Assembly: GCF_032444005.1 (NCBI RefSeq)
Contig: NC_091289.1
Span: forward strand, 9,052,001 to 9,116,000
Origin: Ranitomeya imitator
Lineage: Eukaryota
Reading direction: 5' to 3'
Length of the DNA: 64,000 nucleotides
Shown here: one piece after another, positions 1,215-10,334 of the stretch
Numbering within the stretch: position 1 is the first letter of the stretch
How the letters are laid out: every line of letters starts with the position of its first letter
Notes under the pieces: model-generated
What the model saw: only the letters and a program-made list of their open reading frames with translations
Told to the model about the DNA's origin: nothing
Databases searched by the model: none
Program-made: the position numbers and the translations under genes

Positions 1215-3065
1215 TGAATGTTACAGACCCCGTCTGGGAAAAACAGAGTGGGGGCGATTGTGCCACATTCTTGGTCCATTATCCTCTGTACCGTGTTCTC
1301 TCCGGGCCGGATATTAGAGATGGCAGAGCTTCGGCCCCCGCTCTATCCATAATCCTCGCCGTCGCACATTCTCCTCTCCGAAATCTAGGAAAGGATTTGC
1401 ATATTTAGCGTCGCTGTTCAAAGCGTTGCGATGCCGGATCTGATCTGCGCAGTAAGAGCAGACCTCAGTGATGCTCCACAAGGGGGGACAATAGGAGCCG
1501 TCCGCATTCTCCCCCCAGTCCTGGAGTAAAATCCCATTCTGGGAAAGCTGGGTGAGAAGCAATATGGCCGCCCATGGGTCTCACAGGGGTCATCACCAAA
1601 CAGCACAATCACCCCTTGCTGGGGTCCTTGTACACAAGCAGACCCCCGCTCCGCACTCACGTCTCCATTTACCCTATTGCCTTGTGCCCTGTAGATATTT
1701 CCCGCTGCCATATATGAGCTTTTATAGGACTAGAAGCCCCATGAAGATTCCACAGCGCAAGTGATCAATTAGGGGGCTGGGAAGATGGCGACTGTAACAG
1801 GGGCCCTCCGCTGGGCCCCATAAAGAGGCTCTCCTGTCCTGTCCTGTCAGTCTTAGTCTGGTTGGGCTGTTCCTCTCCTATTCCTCCTGGAAATGACTAA
1901 AACTGACAACCGGGAGCTACTATTCTTTCTGTCAAATGGGTCCCAGCACATTCTATCAAGTGGAAGTAGAAGCGTCTACAATAAATAACTCCATATGCTG
2001 TCAGCAAGCAGAGATCTTGAAACCAGTGAGGAATTGTATCACAGAAAACCCGAATCATTGTAGCATTTGCACCTTTTTTGTGAAGTCCTGGGAGTTTTTC
2101 GCTTCTTTTTATTCACCTGTGAATTTTTCTCTCTTTTTCTGTTATTGTGGGTAGGGATTGGGGTTTCCAGATATTTTCGGCTGAGTCATCAATTTTGACC
2201 TTTTAAAATGTCGCAAAAAAAAAAAGCCCTCTAGTGCTGAAATAGGTTTTCGTACTTTTTTTCCTGTAAAATTTGATACATTTTAGTGGAAAGTGACTTA
2301 TTACACTAAAATGTTGCAAACAAGGTTAAAGACAAAACTAAAAAGTATTATGGATTTTGTGCAATATTCATGAACCCGCGTGCGCTATGATGAAGAATTT
2401 GGCACAAAAATAACAAAAAAACACGAGAAGCGACTTTAAAAAAAAAAAAAAACACGAATGATATATTTGGACAAAGTTGCAGAACTTTTCTTTAGAGATT
2501 CATTTCCATAAACCCAGAAATCCTCGTTAATGATCTTCTGGTCACAGAAAGGAACCGACAGATGGACAAGGACAACTCTCCCCACCATTGTCTGCCAGCT
2601 CAGGAGGGGGAGGGGAGGCATCCATAGGTGCTGGGACCGTATTCAGGGGAGACAGGGGAAGAATTTCTAATCTCCAAATTCCGACATAAAGTTCAGATCC
2701 CAGCTGTGAACTTTCTTCATAACTCGGGGGGCTCAGATGAGGGGAGATCTTATTGTAGCCACTAATGAAGCTCCTCAGAACGTGCAGCAGCGATCACTGG
2801 GGGTCCGCTCATCAATGATCCAACACGCCGCGTTACCCAGTCAACCGGAGAAACTTTCTGTCACCATAGCGACTCCGTAATGAGGGTCCTGAAGCTGAAA
2901 GTCCATGGAAAGTTTTTCTAATATTCTATTCAGCCATGTCCAGGGTATATTGGCGGGTTGACAGCCCCCACAGCCCACTTCTGAGCAGATAGAAAATACA
3001 CTGTGACACAAAGTGACATCATCCTGCATTAGGTGTCAGTCATTACTGCAGTGCCGGTGTAAGAG

Positions 3066-6000
3066 GCCAGAATATACCCCGTCCCAGACTATGCCCGGGG
3101 TTAATGTGGCCTAGGCCAGAGTATACCCCTCCAGGCCAGAATATACCCCATCCCAGTCTATACCCGGGGTTAATGTGGCCTAGGCCAGGATATACCCCTC
3201 CAGGCCAAAATATACCCCGTCCCAGTCTATGCCCGGGGTTAATGTGGCCTAGGCCAGAATATACCCCTCCAGGCCAGAATATACCCCGTCCCAGTCTATG
3301 CCCCGGGTTAATGTGGCCTAGGTCAGAGTATACCCCTCCAGGCCAGAATATACCCCGTCCCAGTCTATGCCCGGGGTTAATGTGGCCTAGGCCAGAATAT
3401 ACCCCTCCAGGCCAGAATATACCCCGTCCCAGTCTATGCCCGGGGTTAATGTGGCCTAGGCCAGAATATACCCCTCCAGGCCAGAATATACCTCGTCCCA
3501 GTCTATGCGCGGGGTTAATGTGGCCTAGGCCAGAGTATACCCATCAGGCCAGAATATCCCCCGTCCCAGACTATGCCCGGGGTTAATGTGGCCTACGTCA
3601 GAATATACCCCGTCCCAGACTATGCCCGGGGTTAATGTGGCCTAGGTCAGAGTATACCCCTCCAGGCCAGAATATCCCCCGTCCCAGTCTATGCCCGGGG
3701 TTAATGTGGCCTAGGCCAGAGTATACCCCTCCAGGCCAGAATATGCCCCGTCCCAGACTATGCCCGGGGTTAATGTGGCCTAGGTCAGAGTATACCCCTC
3801 CAGGCCAGAATATACCCCGTCCCAGACTATGCCTGGGGTTAATGTGGTCTAGGCCAGAATATACCCCTTCAGGCCAGAATAGACCCCGTCTCAGTCTATG
3901 CCCGGGGTTAATGTGGCCTAGGCCAGAATATACCCCTCCAGGCCAGAATATACCTCGTCCCAGCCTATGCCGGGGTTAATGTGGCCTAGGCCAGAGTATA
4001 CCCCTCCAGGCCAAAATATACCCCGTCCCAGTCTATGCCCGGGGTTAATGTGGCCTAGGCCAGAGTATACTCCTCCAGGCCAGAATATACCCCGTTCCAG
4101 ACTATGCCCGGGGTTAATGTGGCCTAGGCCAGAGTATACCCCTCCAGGCCAGAATATACCCTGTCCCAGACTATGCCCGGGGTTAATGTGGCCTAGGCCA
4201 GAGTATACCCCTCCAGGCCAAAATATACCCCATCCCAGTCTATGCCCGGGGTTAATGTGGCTTAGGCCAGAGTATACTCCTCCAGGCCAGAATATACCCC
4301 ATCCCAGACTGTGCCCGGGGTTAATGTGGCCTAGGCCAGAGTATACCCCTCCAGACCAGAATATACCCCATCCCAGACTATGCCCGGGGTTAATGTGGCC
4401 TAGGCCAGAGTATACTCCTCCAGGCCAGAATATACCCCATCCCAGACTATGCCCGGGGTTAATGTGGCCTAGGCCAGAGTATACTCCTCCAGGCCAGAAT
4501 ATACCCCATCCCAGACTGTGCCTGGGGTTAATGTGGCCTAGGCCAGAGTATACCCCTCCAGGCCAGAATATACCCCATCCCAGTCTATGCCCGGGGTTAA
4601 TGCGGCCTAGGCCAGAGTATACCCATCAGGCCAGAATATACCCTGTCCCAGTGTATACCCGGGGTTAATGTGGCCTAGGCCAGAGTATACCCATCAGGCC
4701 AGAATATACCCCGTCCCAGACTATGCCCGGGGTTAATGTGGCCTACGTCAGAGTATACCCCTCCAGGCCAGAATATACCCCGTCCCAGACTATGCCCGGG
4801 GTTAATGTGGCCTAGTTCAGAGTATACCCCTCCAGGCCAGAATATCCCCCGTCCCAGTCTATGCCCGGGGTTAATGTGGCCTAGGCCACAGTATACCCCT
4901 CCAGGCCAGAATATGCCCCGTCCCAGACTATGCCCGGGGTTAATGTGGCCTAGGCCAGAGTATACCCCTTCAGGCCAGAATAGACCCCGTCCCAGTCTAT
5001 GCCCGGGGTTAATGTGGCCTAGGCCAGAATATACCCCTCCAGGCCATAATATACCTCGTCCCAGCCTATGCCGGGGTTAATGTGGCCTAGGCCAGAATGT
5101 ACCCCTCCAGGCCAGGATATACCCCGTCCCAGACTATGCCCGGGGTTAATGTGGCCTAGGTCAGAGTATACCCCTCCAGGCCAGAATATACCCCGTCCCA
5201 GTCTATGCCCGGGGTTAATGTGGCCTAGGCCAGGATATACCCCTCCAGGCCAAAATATACCCCGTCCCAGTCTATGCCCGGGGTTAATGTGGCCTAGGCC
5301 AGAGTATACCCCTCCAGGCCAAAATATACCCCGTCCCAGTCTATGCCCGGGGTTAATGTGGCCTAGGCCAGAGTATACTCCTCCAGGCCAGAATATACCC
5401 CGTTCCAGACTATGCCCGGGGTTAATGTGGCCTAGGCCAGAGTATACCCCTCCAGGCCAGAATATACCCCGTCCCAGACTATGCCCGGGGTTAATGTGGC
5501 CTAGGTCAGAGTATACCCCTCCAGGCCAGAATATCCCCTGTCCCAGTCTATGCCCGGGGTTAATGTGGCCTAGGCCAGAGTATACCCCTCCAGGCCAGAA
5601 TATGCCCCGTCCCAGACTATGCCCGGGGTTAATGTGGCCTAGGTCAGAGTATACCCCTCCAGGCCAGAATATACCCCGTCCCAGACTATGCCCGGGGTTA
5701 ATGTGGCCTAGGCCAGAATATACCCCTTCAGGCCAGAATAGACCCCGTCCCAGTCTATGCCCGGGGTTAATGTGGCCTAGGCCAGAATATACCCCTCCAG
5801 GCCAGAATATACCTCGTCCCAGCCTATGCCGGGGTTAATGTGGCCTAGGCCAGAATGTACCCCTCCAGGCCAGGATATACCCCGTCCCAGACTATGCCCG
5901 GGGTTAATGTGGCCTAGGTCAGAGTATACCCCTCCAGGCCAGAATATACCCCGTCCCAGTCTATGCCCGGGGTTAATGTGGCCTAGGCCAGGATATACCC

Positions 6001-6829
6001 CTCCAGGCCAAAATATACCCCGTCCCAGTCTATGCCCGGGGTTAATGTGGCCTAGGCCAGGATATACCCCTCCAGGCCAAAATATACCCCGTCCCAGTCT
6101 ATGCCCGGGGTTAATGTGGCCTAGGCCAGAGTATACCCCTCCAGGCCAAAATATACCCCGTCCCAGTCTATGCCCGGGGTTAATGTGGCCTAGGCCAGAG
6201 TATACTCCTCCAGGCCAGAATATACCCCGTTCCAGACTATGCCCGGGGTTAATGTGGCCTAGGCCAGAGTATACCCCTCCAGGCCAAAATATACCCCGTC
6301 CCAGTCTATGCCCGGGGTTAATGTGGCCTAGGCCAGAGTATACTCCTCCAGGCCAGAATATACCCCATCCCAGACTGTGCCCGGGGTTAATGTGGCCTAG
6401 GCCAGAGTATACCCCTCCAGACCAGAATATACCCCATCCCAGACTATGCCCGGGGTTAATGTGGCCTAGGCCAGAGTATACTCCTCCAGGCCAGAATATA
6501 CCCCATCACAGACTGTGCCCGGGGTTAATGTGGCCTAGGCCAGAATATACCCCATCCCAGTCTATGCCCGGGGTTAATGTGGCCTAGGCCAGAGTATACC
6601 CATCAGGCCAGAATATACCCTGTGCCAGTGTATACCCGGGGTTAATGTGGCCTAGGCCAGGATATACCCCTCCAGGCCAAAATATACCCCGTCCCAGTCT
6701 ATGCCCGGGGTTAATGTGGCCTAGGCCAGGATATACCCCTCCAGGCCAAAATATACCCCGTCCCAGTCTATGCCCGGGGTTAATGTGGCTTAGGCCAGAG
6801 TATACCCCTCCAGGCCAGAATATACCCCC
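3066..6829 (+). repeat. 69-bp minisatellite, about 55 copies
   Basis: Unit CCAGGCCAGAATATACCCCGTCCCAGTCTATGCCCGGGGTTAATGTGGCCTAGGCCAGAGTATACCCCT; period 69 checked (3241 to 3310). Confidence 0.97.
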
Positions 6830-6832
6830 CTT

Positions 6833-7225
6833 GGACAACCATGGCGTACATATAAAACCAAAGGTGATGGGAACTGCTACTTCCGGGCCATCAGCTACAT
6901 CCTGACAGAACAGAGGACAATCACTCCCTTCTCAGAGATAAAGTCATCCACCGCATGAAAACTGCCATGACAAAAAAGACAGGACTACTTGAGTCAAGAT
7001 GTGACTGAATCTGTGAACACCTCTGGCATCTCTCGTAATGGAGTCTGGGCAACTGATGCAGAGATCATGGCCACAGCGAATCTGTTGAATTGCGACATTG
7101 TCATCCACACAAATGTCGGTGACTCCATGGATTGGTTGACATCCCGCAAACTTTAATCTGCAGTCAACAACAGAGCAGGCACTTTATCCTGAAAATAAGC
7201 AGGATCATATTAATGTATCAGTGTT
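6833..7225 (+). pseudogene. Frameshifted OTU-family cysteine protease domain fragment (transposon-derived)
   Basis: Translation across about 3 frameshifts: GQPWRTYKTKGDGNCYFRAISYILT / TEDNHSLLRDKVI...GVWATDAEIMATANLLNCDIVIHT...ALYPENKQDHINV. Shows OTU motifs GDGNCxFRAIS (Cys codon 6875-6877), W-x-T-D-x-E-I-x-A and terminal His (7206-7208). Confidence 0.75.
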
Positions 7226-7392
7226 TGCCTTTAACCGTTTATATTGTAGCAAGGACTTGCTAGTCTACAGTAAGGCCATGGATAAAAAGTCGCATGCAAC
7301 AAGTCGCCGTGTGTCCCTGCCCTAAAGGTCCCAATACACCGGGCAACTATTATGTGATTTGGGTGGGTGATCAGGAAAAACACCAAAATTTG

Positions 7393-8479
7393 GGCCTGGA
7401 GGGGTATACTCTGGCCTAGGACACTTTAACACCGGGCATAGTCTGGGACGGGGTATATTCTGGTCTGGAGGGATATATTCTGGCCTAGGACACTTTAACC
7501 CCGGGCATAGTCTGGGACGGGGTATATTCTGGCCTGGAGGGATATATTCTGGCCTAGGACACTTTAACCCTGGGCATAGTCTGGGACGGGGTATATTCTG
7601 GCCTGGAGGGGTATATTCTGGCCTAGGACACTTTAACCCCGGGCATAGTCTGGGACAGGGTATATTCTGGTCTGGAGGGATATATTCTGGCCTAGGACAC
7701 TTTAACCCCGGGCATAGTCTGGGACGGGGTATATTCTGGCCTGGAGGGGTATAATGTGGTCCAGGACACTTTAACCCCGGGCATAGTCTGGGACGGGGTA
7801 TATTCTGGCCTGGAGGGGTATATTCTGGCCTAGGACACTTTAACCCCGGGCATAGTCTGGGACGGGGTATATTCTGGCCTAGGACACTTTAACACCGGGC
7901 ATAGTCTGGGACGGGGTATATTCTGGCCTGGAGGGATATATTCTGGCCTAGGACACTTTAACACCGGGCATAGTCTGGGACGGGGTATATTCTGGCCTGG
8001 AGGGGTATCATGTGGTCCAGGACACTTTAACCCCAGGCATAGTCTGGGACGGGGTATATTCTGGCCTGGAGGGGTATATTCTGGCCTAGGACACTTTAAC
8101 ACCGGGCATAGTCTGGGACGGGGTATATTCTGGCCTGGAGGGGTATCATGTGGTCCAGGACACTTTAACACCGGGCATAGTCTGGGACGGGGTATATTCT
8201 GGCCTGGAGGGGTATATTCTGGCCTAGGACACTTTAACCCCGGGCATAGTCTGGGACGGGGTATAGTCTGGCCTGGAGGGGTATAATGTGGTCCAGGACA
8301 CTTTAACCCCGGGCATAGTCTGGGACGGGGTATAGTCTGGCCTGGAGGGGTATAATGTGGTCCAGGACACTTTAACCCCGGGCATAGTCTGGGACGGGGT
8401 ATAGTCTGGCCTGGAGGGGTATAATGTGGTCCAGGACACTTTAACCCCGGGCATAGTCTGGGACGGGGTATATTCTGGC
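7393..8479 (-). repeat. Inverted variant of the 69-bp minisatellite, about 16 copies
   Basis: Reverse complement matches the 3066-6829 unit except GTTAAAGTGTCCT instead of GTTAATGTGGCCT; period 69 (7441 to 7510). Confidence 0.95.
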
Positions 8480-8882
8480 AGCGGCATTACATTCATGAGC
8501 CATGCAATAAGTTTGGGATGCAGAAGAGGGGATGTCATGACCATAGATCAAAATATATCTAGGAAACAGGGCTCCATGGAGGTAACAAGTCACCCAGTAT
8601 CTCCTTCTCCCCAACCCGGGAAATGGGACTAAAGACTATAATATTAGGAGATGTCTCCGGAAGGAAATGTCCGCGGCAGGTAAGACGTTCAATACCGCAA
8701 TACAGAGCAAAATGGAGGACGGGGGAGAAGAGCGCGCCGCTACATGAGATACAGGATAACATCTGCTCGCTGCTGGGAAAGAACAGAGACATTCTGCAGA
8801 AAAATGGAAAATCCCCAGGAAATAATATTCTTCACCAGCCCCCAGAATTCCCACCTGGCAGTAGAAGAGACCCCTAGATTAA

Positions 8883-9258
8883 GGCTATGTGCACACGTTG
8901 CAGATTTGACTGGAATTTTCTGTGGAGATTCTGAATTTCTTGGCAGAAAACGCAGGTCAGAATCTGCGCCTTTTTTTTGGTCTGTGCACACGTTGCAGAT
9001 TTTTGAGCAGATTTCTTTCTTTTTTCCCCCCTGCAGATTTCTATTATGGAATGGGTGCAGAAACGCAGCAGATCTGCACAAAGAATTGACGTGGTCCTTT
9101 TTTGAATCTGCTGCGTTTTCTGTGCGGATTTTTCCACACCATCGCAACATTTTTTTTTTTTGCCATTGATTTACATTGTACTGTAAAACGCTTGCAGAGT
9201 TTCTGAGCGGAAAAAAAGCTGCAGTTCTGCAGGAAATCTGCAACGTGTGCACATACCC
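8883..9258. mobile_element. MITE, PIF/Harbinger-like (same terminal family as 853-1214)
   Basis: TIRs GGCTATGTGCACACGTTGCAGATT / ATCTGCAACGTGTGCACATACCC; flanks TAA and TTA. Confidence 0.8.
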
Positions 9259-10334
9259 TTATACTTACGGGGAATGGTATAACTTCATGGAGCGATACCC
9301 CACAGTACTGTCCCCCATACATTGTCCAAAATTCAAGCAGTGCTGCAGAGTAAAGTAAGGGGGAGGGAAAAAAGTATACACATCAATCCATGGTGTATAA
9401 ATTCTAGTGCGACTATTCCCTCTCCCCTATACTTTACACTGCAGTACTGCATGTAAGCAAATCAGTAGATGAGCTGCTAACCTGAAGAAGCTGTACTGAA
9501 GGGTAAAGTATAGGGGAATGAGAATATCACCTCATCTACTGAATTTTTGCTTATATGCAGCAGCCAATCTAAACAAGCAGCACTGCGGTGTAAAGTATCG
9601 GGGAGAGGGAATAGTCGGCTAATCTGCTGTACTAGAATGTATACACCGCAGCCCACCAGGACAATTAGTGAGAGAAATGTCTGCGGACCTTATGCCTATC
9701 CATAGCAGCCAGTTGGAACAGGCAGTGCTGCACTATAAAGCATGGCAGCACAAAACAGTTGCATATTATTTATTATATACAGCTAATAATCCAGACTCTG
9801 ACAATCTGCACCTGTCTGGATCCATTGATGCCGCATTTTTTTTTTTTTGCAGTAGAGACACCAAGGCCTTCTGCTGCCATATAAAAGCTAAACCTGTATC
9901 TGCGGCCCCCTCCTCCCGGGCAGAGACCATCAACTAAAAGCGGAATTATTCGTCCCTCGGGCTCCAGCTCTGGAGATACATACAAATGAATCAGCCGCCA
10001 ACGAGAGCGTCCTGCAGATTGTCCACAGGCTGCGCTAATGCGTCTGGCCCGCGCCTCATTAGTATTGATTAAGCCACAAAATAGCTGCATGCCCCCTGGA
10101 CCAGGGACGGGGCCCCCCTCTAATGTTTGAGAGCCCCCACAATCCAGAGAATGAGGGGATCCCCAGGGTTTGGGGAGAGACGCACCAAACCTCCATATTC
10201 AGGTGGCTGGAAGGTGTAAGAACCTCTGGTCTGAACACGGCTTCTCCCATCCCGAAGCGACGATGATGTCGGCTCTGTCTTATAAAGCTTCTGGGCCAAG
10301 ACTGAAATTCTCACCGAGACTGATGACAAGTTAA

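Follow-up and report, generated by a model that had tools for sequence, protein, structure and literature searches.

We analysed a 64,000-nucleotide stretch of the genome of the frog Ranitomeya imitator (contig NC_091289.1, positions 9,052,001 to 9,116,000; hereafter the window), near the start of which lies an element made up of two inverted minisatellite arms ranged around a short, decayed protein-coding core. When the count is anchored on the repeat unit, window positions 3058–8491 resolve into 55 direct units of 69 bp, a core of 564 bp and 16 inverted units, which bears out the original prediction, made from the letters of the window alone, that two inverted minisatellite arms surround an OTU protease core. 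The explanation that we favour, with a probability of roughly 0.88, is that this element is a dead, non-autonomous relic of a cut-and-paste DNA transposon of the Ginger1 type, whose ends have been multiplied into inverted arrays.

The 69-bp period was recovered by Tandem Repeats Finder on the plus strand at 3064–6828 and in the inverted sense at 7393–8479 (93% matches), and a 27-nt pattern taken from the unit gives 65 matches across the window, all of them within these two blocks, against an expectation of 0. The intervening core (6829–7392) is single-copy within the window. On the left, CCGG (3054–3057) is followed by TGTAAGAGGCCAGAAT from 3058 onwards; on the right, the block reads ...ATTCTGGCAGCGGCATTACA up to 8491, with TTACA occupying 8487–8491 and TTCATGAG lying beyond. 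The arms are of different length, 3.77 kb on the left vs 1.09 kb on the right. Successive units of the left arm are mostly spaced by 69 bp (41 spacings), with seven spacings of 68 bp, four of 49 bp and two of 89 bp, plus the last unit, and the right arm comprises fifteen units of 69 bp and a single one of 49 bp.

Read in frame pieces that were searched separately, the core is recognizable as an OTU domain. The piece at 6794–6955 carries KGDGNCYFRAISY, with the catalytic Cys codon at 6875–6877; that at 6971–7153 matches positions 52–93 of PF02338 (E 2.7e-4); the piece at 7140–7322 carries NKQDHINV, with the catalytic His codon at 7206–7208; and WATDAEIMATANLLNCDIVIH is also read among these frames. 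A core piece further matches Peptidase_C65, of the clan of OTU (E 1.4e-3), this match and the one to PF02338 both lying under the curated cut-offs. The intact OTU frames of the relatives L003 and L004, 84–88% identical to the core in DNA, score 47–49 bits against a cut-off of 23.3. In a word search, a 61-residue piece of the core retrieved three proteins at 79–84% identity, the contigs of which include L003 and L004, and the core as a whole has 81–90% DNA identity to L003, L004, L001, L005, L007, L012 and L010; a look-up in a protein atlas gave OTU only, with no wider architecture. These results confirm the proposed OTU domain with Cys and His codons in place. The proposal that it is read across frameshifts was correct as to the frameshifts and understated the decay: compared with the intact frames (alignment A2), the core has undergone at least four deletions (of 1 bp near 6907, of 4 bp near 7211, and of 2 bp near both 6976 and 7139), has acquired premature stops, for example at 6956, and has lost the native stop codon, which in L003 and L004 directly follows a protein end of ...DHFDVVISV. 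The catalytic codons are kept, yet the gene is dead.

Ginger1 elements are defined by TGTNR termini, a CCGG or CCGT target-site duplication (TSD), terminal inverted repeats (TIRs) of ~40–270 bp, a Gypsy-like integrase with the YPYY, H2C2, DDE and GPY/F motifs, and a C-terminal protease of the OTU or Ulp1 type (Bao, Kapitonov and Jurka 2010, PMC2836005). The C-terminal protease, of the OTU kind, is found here, and the Gypsy-like integrase, deleted from the window copy, is found in relatives that are 85–90% identical to it in DNA. At L001, remnants of a Gypsy-type integrase lie directly upstream of the OTU region, including ...ACHDNPISGDHFG..., RYYWKGMKNDIHQHVKASQKC and SSAYYPQTNDQWERDN; they align to the YPxxxY, H2C2 and DDE-E regions of the protein P0037 (alignment A1), and the match to Integrase_H2C2 reaches 27.3 bits against a cut-off of 25.5. 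The gene is almost complete on L010, a GenBank whole-genome shotgun contig that is 87.5% identical to the window across their overlap: interrupted by one stop and one frameshift, it runs from YPPCIY through H2C2 (72.9 bits), rve (41.3 bits) and an SH3-like module (SH3_Tf2-1, 25.3 bits, under its cut-off) to the start of OTU. In L003, P0004, P0010, P0012 and P0016, the WIGPY (GPY/F, SH3_Tf2-1-like) module lies ~90 residues upstream of OTU, and both WIGPY and YPQWIY/YPPCIY can be read directly in the relatives. An exhaustive profile-free search with P0004 gave 2,790 relatives, and the long relatives P0037, P0048, P0110, P0123 and P0134 (650–850 residues) combine H2C2, rve and a C-terminal OTU. 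On a metagenome contig of the Joint Genome Institute (JGI), the element L006 (2322–4967, or 2318–4971 with its flanks) has an uninterrupted open reading frame (ORF) of 649 residues with H2C2, rve and OTU; this Ginger1, complete but more distant, looks potentially autonomous.

The OTU domain evidently belongs to a Gypsy-type integrase protein, as its C-terminal end; the linkage to an integrase, and neither to a Rep/helicase protein nor to a host gene, had been foreseen in the original prediction and is what L001, L003, L010 and P0037 display. A full-length element with integrase and OTU, which had been expected elsewhere in the frog genome, exists in public data in near full-length form as L010, of the same family, and intact as the more distant L006; a master copy in the frog genome itself is a conjecture. 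L001 and L002 do not count as two separate copies: both represent one 20-kb locus in duplicate (95–99% identity), so they provide no element boundaries. At this locus, a tandem array with a 30-bp period (L002:2992–4688, L001:6385–6851) precedes the Ginger1 remnant by a few kb; it is longer in L002 and is called there as an ORF of 608 residues. The first ~60 bases of another contig (L003:1–60) translate like an Illumina adaptor and are probably an assembly artefact.

Among the proteins, a hypothetical protein of the skink Lerista edwardsae (P0042, KAJ6665934.1) possesses the H2C2 and GPY/SH3 parts of the integrase, with 75% identity to P0004 and 57–72% to L010, L005 and L003. This identity is high for a frog and a squamate under vertical inheritance, and may reflect either horizontal transfer or separately surviving lineages.

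Termini were read in the 24 loci obtained by scanning metagenome contigs with P0004, together with L004. Nine of the ten related-copy termini that were aligned (alignment A3) read TGTAAC, the right end of L028 being TGTAAT. TGTAAC stands directly after CCGG on the left of L007, L012, L017 and L018 and on the right of L004, L005 and L018; the TGTAAT of L028 likewise follows CCGG, and the left end of that element, which is outside the alignment, is flanked by CCGG too. CCGG is present on both sides of the complete elements L018, L028 and L006, the last of which ends TGTAAC...CCACA; it is seen on one side in L004, L005, L007 and L012, and L017 is flanked by CCGG and CCTG. The family displays the target duplication of Ginger1, as CCGG, and the expectation that other copies would have TGT...ACA ends between CCGG duplications is upheld, on both sides, by L018, L028 and L006. 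Ends of the Ginger1 TGTNR (TGT...ACA) type are also found in the window, where the left end reads TGTAAG and, as CCGG followed by TGTAAGAGGCCAGAATATACCCC, fits the family consensus. What had been claimed of this copy's own ends stands for the left one; the right terminus is degenerate, and there is no TSD. Four readings of it were weighed: a TTACA end with an insertion of 4 nt; a 7-bp deletion of CTGTTAC that left GCGG as a decayed TSD; a terminus of TG only, as in the MAFFT alignment; and a deletion spanning the terminus and the flank.

The origin of the arms becomes apparent from the unexpanded relatives, in which the TIR is ~100–250 bp long and consists of successive GGCCAGnnTATACCCC-like motifs oriented both ways, the normal TIR of the family being made up of several GGCCAGAATATACCCC-like motifs. 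The 69-bp unit aligns with the outermost TIR module of these relatives, ~7–75 from the terminus; thus, the arms are tandem multiplications of the terminal TIR module, and the view of them as TIRs expanded into minisatellites proves right. The window copy falls outside the TIR length of ~40–270 bp known for Ginger1, and the excess is tandem expansion of the terminal module, not another kind of end. All 16 right units have TTAAAGTGTCC at the place where all 55 left units have TTAATGTGG (GGCC in 54 and GGTC in one). The mean identity of the units is 94% within an arm and 89% between arms, which, together with these arm-specific variants, indicates separate construction or homogenisation of the two arrays. 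Duplicated blocks also occur in the left arm: 4916–5356 recurs at 5674–6114 (440 bp, 99.1% identity, shift of 758 bp), 3599–3959 recurs at 5458–5818 (360 bp, 98.9%, shift of 1,859 bp), and a further block of 350 bp recurs at 98.9% with a shift of 827 bp. Such blocks, with their shifts of 0.76–1.9 kb, point to unequal exchange of multi-unit blocks later than the unit-level growth.

We also aligned contigs of four public sequencing runs (X1, X2, X7 and X22) to window positions 6700–8900. The core and the 69-bp units are both high-copy in these runs, the core being multi-copy in all four, and one contig of X22 is identical to the window across 7118–7363. Contigs with a loose end at 6829/6830 continue upstream into ...GGCACAAGAGAT, coding sequence of the linker (...GRTRDL GQP...) as found in L003 and L004. 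As other copies continue at this point into coding sequence, the boundary between 6828 and 6829 is the junction of the internal deletion that removed the integrase. On the other side, 7216–7383 is covered by other-copy contigs of X1, X2 and X22, which also enter GGAGGGGTATA at ~7383; other copies share both the 3′ segment and its transition to the right TIR, and hence that side is native. From ~7265 on, the segment has no homology to the 3′ part of either L003 or L004. The integrase–OTU gene of the relatives, the TGTAA/CCGG termini and the deletion junction together support the description of the element as an internally deleted Ginger1 derivative.

These observations lead to the following history for the element. 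The transposase of the family combines a Gypsy-type integrase with an OTU protease at its C-terminus, the ends have the form TGTAA...TTACA and a CCGG target is duplicated; the repeated GGCCAGAATATACCCC-like motif is the putative binding site of the transposase. An internal deletion, which probably arose by abortive gap repair and has 2–3 nt of possible microhomology at its junction, fused the left TIR to the core 12 codons ahead of the catalytic Cys of OTU, so that the whole integrase was lost. The outermost 69-bp module of the TIR has been multiplied, to 55 copies in the left arm and 16 in the right, and slippage and unequal exchange would have enlarged the arrays separately in each arm, probably for the most part at this locus. 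Because one terminus and its target duplication have been lost, the element is presumably no longer mobilisable. The features of the element are collected in Table 1.

Table 1. Features of the Ginger1-derived element, in window coordinates
Feature	Coordinates	Strand	Basis
CCGG flank (Ginger1 target site, left copy)	3054..3057		direct reading; CCGG likewise adjoins 9/10 termini of related copies
Left terminus TGTAAGAGG, TGTNR type	3058..3066	+	aligns with TGTAACAGG at termini of L004, L007, L017, L018, L012, L005
Left arm, 55 tandem units from terminal TIR module	3067..6828	+	repeat finder, unit anchoring
Decayed OTU protease domain, C-terminal tail of Ginger1 transposase	6829..7224	+	Pfam on pieces; DNA identity to relatives
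3′ untranslated segment between OTU and right TIR	7225..7392	+	contigs of other copies
Right arm, 16 inverted units	7393..8479	-	repeat finder, unit anchoring
Irregular right end AGCGGCATTACA	8480..8491	-	TTACA-ended; misfit to family terminus CTGTTACA; TTCA next, not CCGG

Several observations weigh against this history. The window lacks an integrase, and the assignment to Ginger1 depends on relatives found in other assemblies. Of the 11 aligned termini, the right one of this copy alone does not fit: the final 8–12 nt fail to align with the family terminus, the TTACA is out of register, and the flanks, CCGG before the element and TTCA after it, form no matching TSD. Moreover, the growth of the arrays at this locus is no more than probable, and a contig of X1 (1,141 bp, at single-copy depth) bridges the same junction between arm and OTU (6745–6908) at ~88% identity. 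The latter hints that the deleted form is present at more than one locus; the deletion would then be older than this insertion, and perhaps some of the arm growth as well. Such a contig would be expected if the kilobase arms and the OTU-only core had transposed as such, as a mobile foldback family served by a Ginger1 transposase in trans, the locus in the window being one of its insertions. Contigs of X2 and X7 in which left-type units are joined directly to inverted right-arm units fit this too, as they resemble coreless TIR–TIR derivatives. However, the complete relatives L017, L018 and L028 are only ~0.85–1.05 kb long and have unexpanded TIRs, the arms in the window are very unequal, and this copy has no TSD. 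Further, the arms differ by fixed substitutions, and the blocks of 99% identity in the left arm are younger than the mean unit divergence of 6%; therefore, at least the last growth was local. We consider a mobile foldback family possible but unlikely.

The mismatched flanks and the deviant right terminus could alternatively mean that the element is a recombinant of two Ginger1 insertions, produced by ectopic exchange, or that a deletion has taken away the right terminus, the CCGG and some of the flank. The fixed substitutions separating the arms speak for this as well. In addition, the 74 bases immediately beyond the right end (8492–8565), which may be part of the insertion, filler DNA or a lineage-specific stretch, are covered by no contig of the four runs, and an X7 contig that matches 8566–8882, at single-copy depth, runs on leftwards from 8566 for 1,299 nt that are unlike the element. 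Yet imperfect TIRs are normal in the family, the left and right ends of L018 themselves being different, so the arm variants need no second element; a within-window search for copies of the core found no second partial element nearby; and TTACA is still in place at the right end. We regard a recombinant or a terminal deletion as rather improbable. The OTU domain could also have come from a Helitron or Helentron, or have been a fragment of a host OTUD gene caught between unrelated satellite arrays, and P0070 and P0083, which consist of Helitron_like_N, PIF1 and OTU, do occur among the distant matches at 34–37% identity. To this we give next to no credence: relatives at 81–90% DNA identity have the integrase immediately upstream and OTU at the C-terminus, in the Helitron proteins OTU is N-terminal, the arms are homologous to Ginger1 TIR ends, and the core is multi-copy in the four sequencing runs. 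All the conditions under which the original prediction would have failed were checked, and each came out on the side of Ginger1.

Our analysis also covered the flanks of the element. An inverted repeat reaching ~60 bp into them, as would be found in a larger element or in a host miniature inverted-repeat transposable element (MITE), was rejected, as the inverted similarity was not above that of shuffled controls: in the three flank windows compared, 200, 140 and 17 of 500 shuffles reached the observed Smith–Waterman score. TCATGAAT is common to the neighbourhood of the left end in L001 and to the right flank of the element in the window, probably by chance. A MITE-like structure adjoins the element on the right (8880–9261), with 28-nt arms TAAGGCTATGTGCACACGTTGCAGATTT that show 96% complementarity and are separated by 326 nt; the arm recurs a third time at 8979–9002, and related pieces occur ~7 kb upstream (850–877 and 1177–1219). 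Further to the right, 9410–9617 contains a 45-nt inverted repeat with 91% complementarity and 118 nt between its arms, nested with more inverted and direct copies of the CAAGCAGTGCTGCAG...GTAAAGTA motif.

Ginger1 was first defined in invertebrates. To our knowledge, it was long held to be absent from tetrapods, apart from the domesticated genes GIN1 and GIN2. Before the present analysis, only degraded protein relics of tetrapod Ginger1 were available (2022); the locus and its relatives now allow a full description of a vertebrate-associated Ginger1 family, with its termini, CCGG duplications, motif-built TIRs, near-complete integrase–OTU gene and deletion derivatives. They also provide a clear worked example, outside Drosophila, of inverted kilobase minisatellites that grew from the terminal module of a transposon. 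In the host gene, the element amounts to 5.4 kb of GC-rich, potentially hairpin-forming DNA in a putative intron, which the original prediction took to be intron 1 of SRGAP3; we found no sign of function of the element. The ends, the CCGG duplications and the many deletion derivatives could further be taken to mean that the lineage was properly active in frogs during approximately the past tens of millions of years, and was perhaps shared with squamates, given the 57–75% identity of the Lerista edwardsae protein; it would then be a candidate for horizontal transfer between tetrapods. The 69-bp module may also be a genome-wide seed of inverted minisatellites, and an intact integrase–OTU master might still reside in the frog. 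We offer this wider scenario tentatively, and judge it doubtful as it stands.

Comparison with known systems helps to place the element. Its OTU domain is related to those of Helitrons and Helentrons at 34–37% identity, and the OTU domains of Ginger1 and Helitrons had already been aligned together by Bao et al. (PMC2836005). The Helitron-type proteins P0070 and P0083 are nevertheless weaker matches, at 120–128 bits vs 235 bits for the integrase-linked P0037, and the Helitron/Helentron combination of OTU with Rep and a PIF1-type helicase is not what the frog family has: no Rep or helicase domain was found in the long OTU relatives scanned down to ~96 bits, OTU is C-terminal to an integrase, and the family possesses the TIRs and TSD that Helitrons lack. 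With the OTU-bearing families of Ginger1, such as Ginger1-1_HM (PMC2836005), it shares the TGTNR termini, the CCGG duplication and, in its relatives, the integrase with a C-terminal OTU, and the named relatives of its OTU domain include proteins of Hydra (42–43% identity). The frog element differs from them in its host, in the loss of the integrase, in arms of 3.77 and 1.09 kb where those families have TIRs of 40–270 bp, and in one terminus and the TSD that are not intact.

The closest parallel to the arms is Tetris, a foldback element in which tandem repeats internal to the TIRs grow into kilobase arrays (Dias et al. 2014, PMC4079207). Both are non-autonomous, have tandem-repeat TIRs grown to arrays of kilobase size, and occur in modular, rearranged forms; of the features of the foldback type (FB, Tetris-like), we found arms of tandem subrepeats and no coding capacity, whereas for transposition of the expanded form there is no TSD here and only one bridging contig elsewhere. 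They differ in superfamily, in the source of the transposase, which is not known for Tetris and is Ginger1 here, and in the unit, of ~220 bp in Tetris vs 69 bp here; also, the free-standing satellite arrays known for Tetris are not part of the present picture. Finally, protein relics of Ginger1 have been reported from alligator, turtle and coelacanth, with many in frog (Frith 2022, PMC9004415), and the element in the window is such a relic. The suggestion that its architecture was undescribed in amphibians holds only in part, since the frog relics were already published; what is added to those protein fossils is the definition, for one family, of the ends, the TSDs, the TIR structure and the near full-length copies. 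Both a Ginger1 relic and satellite growth from TIRs are of kinds already known, and the element is a well-delimited further case that combines them, useful for the annotation of repeats in frogs.

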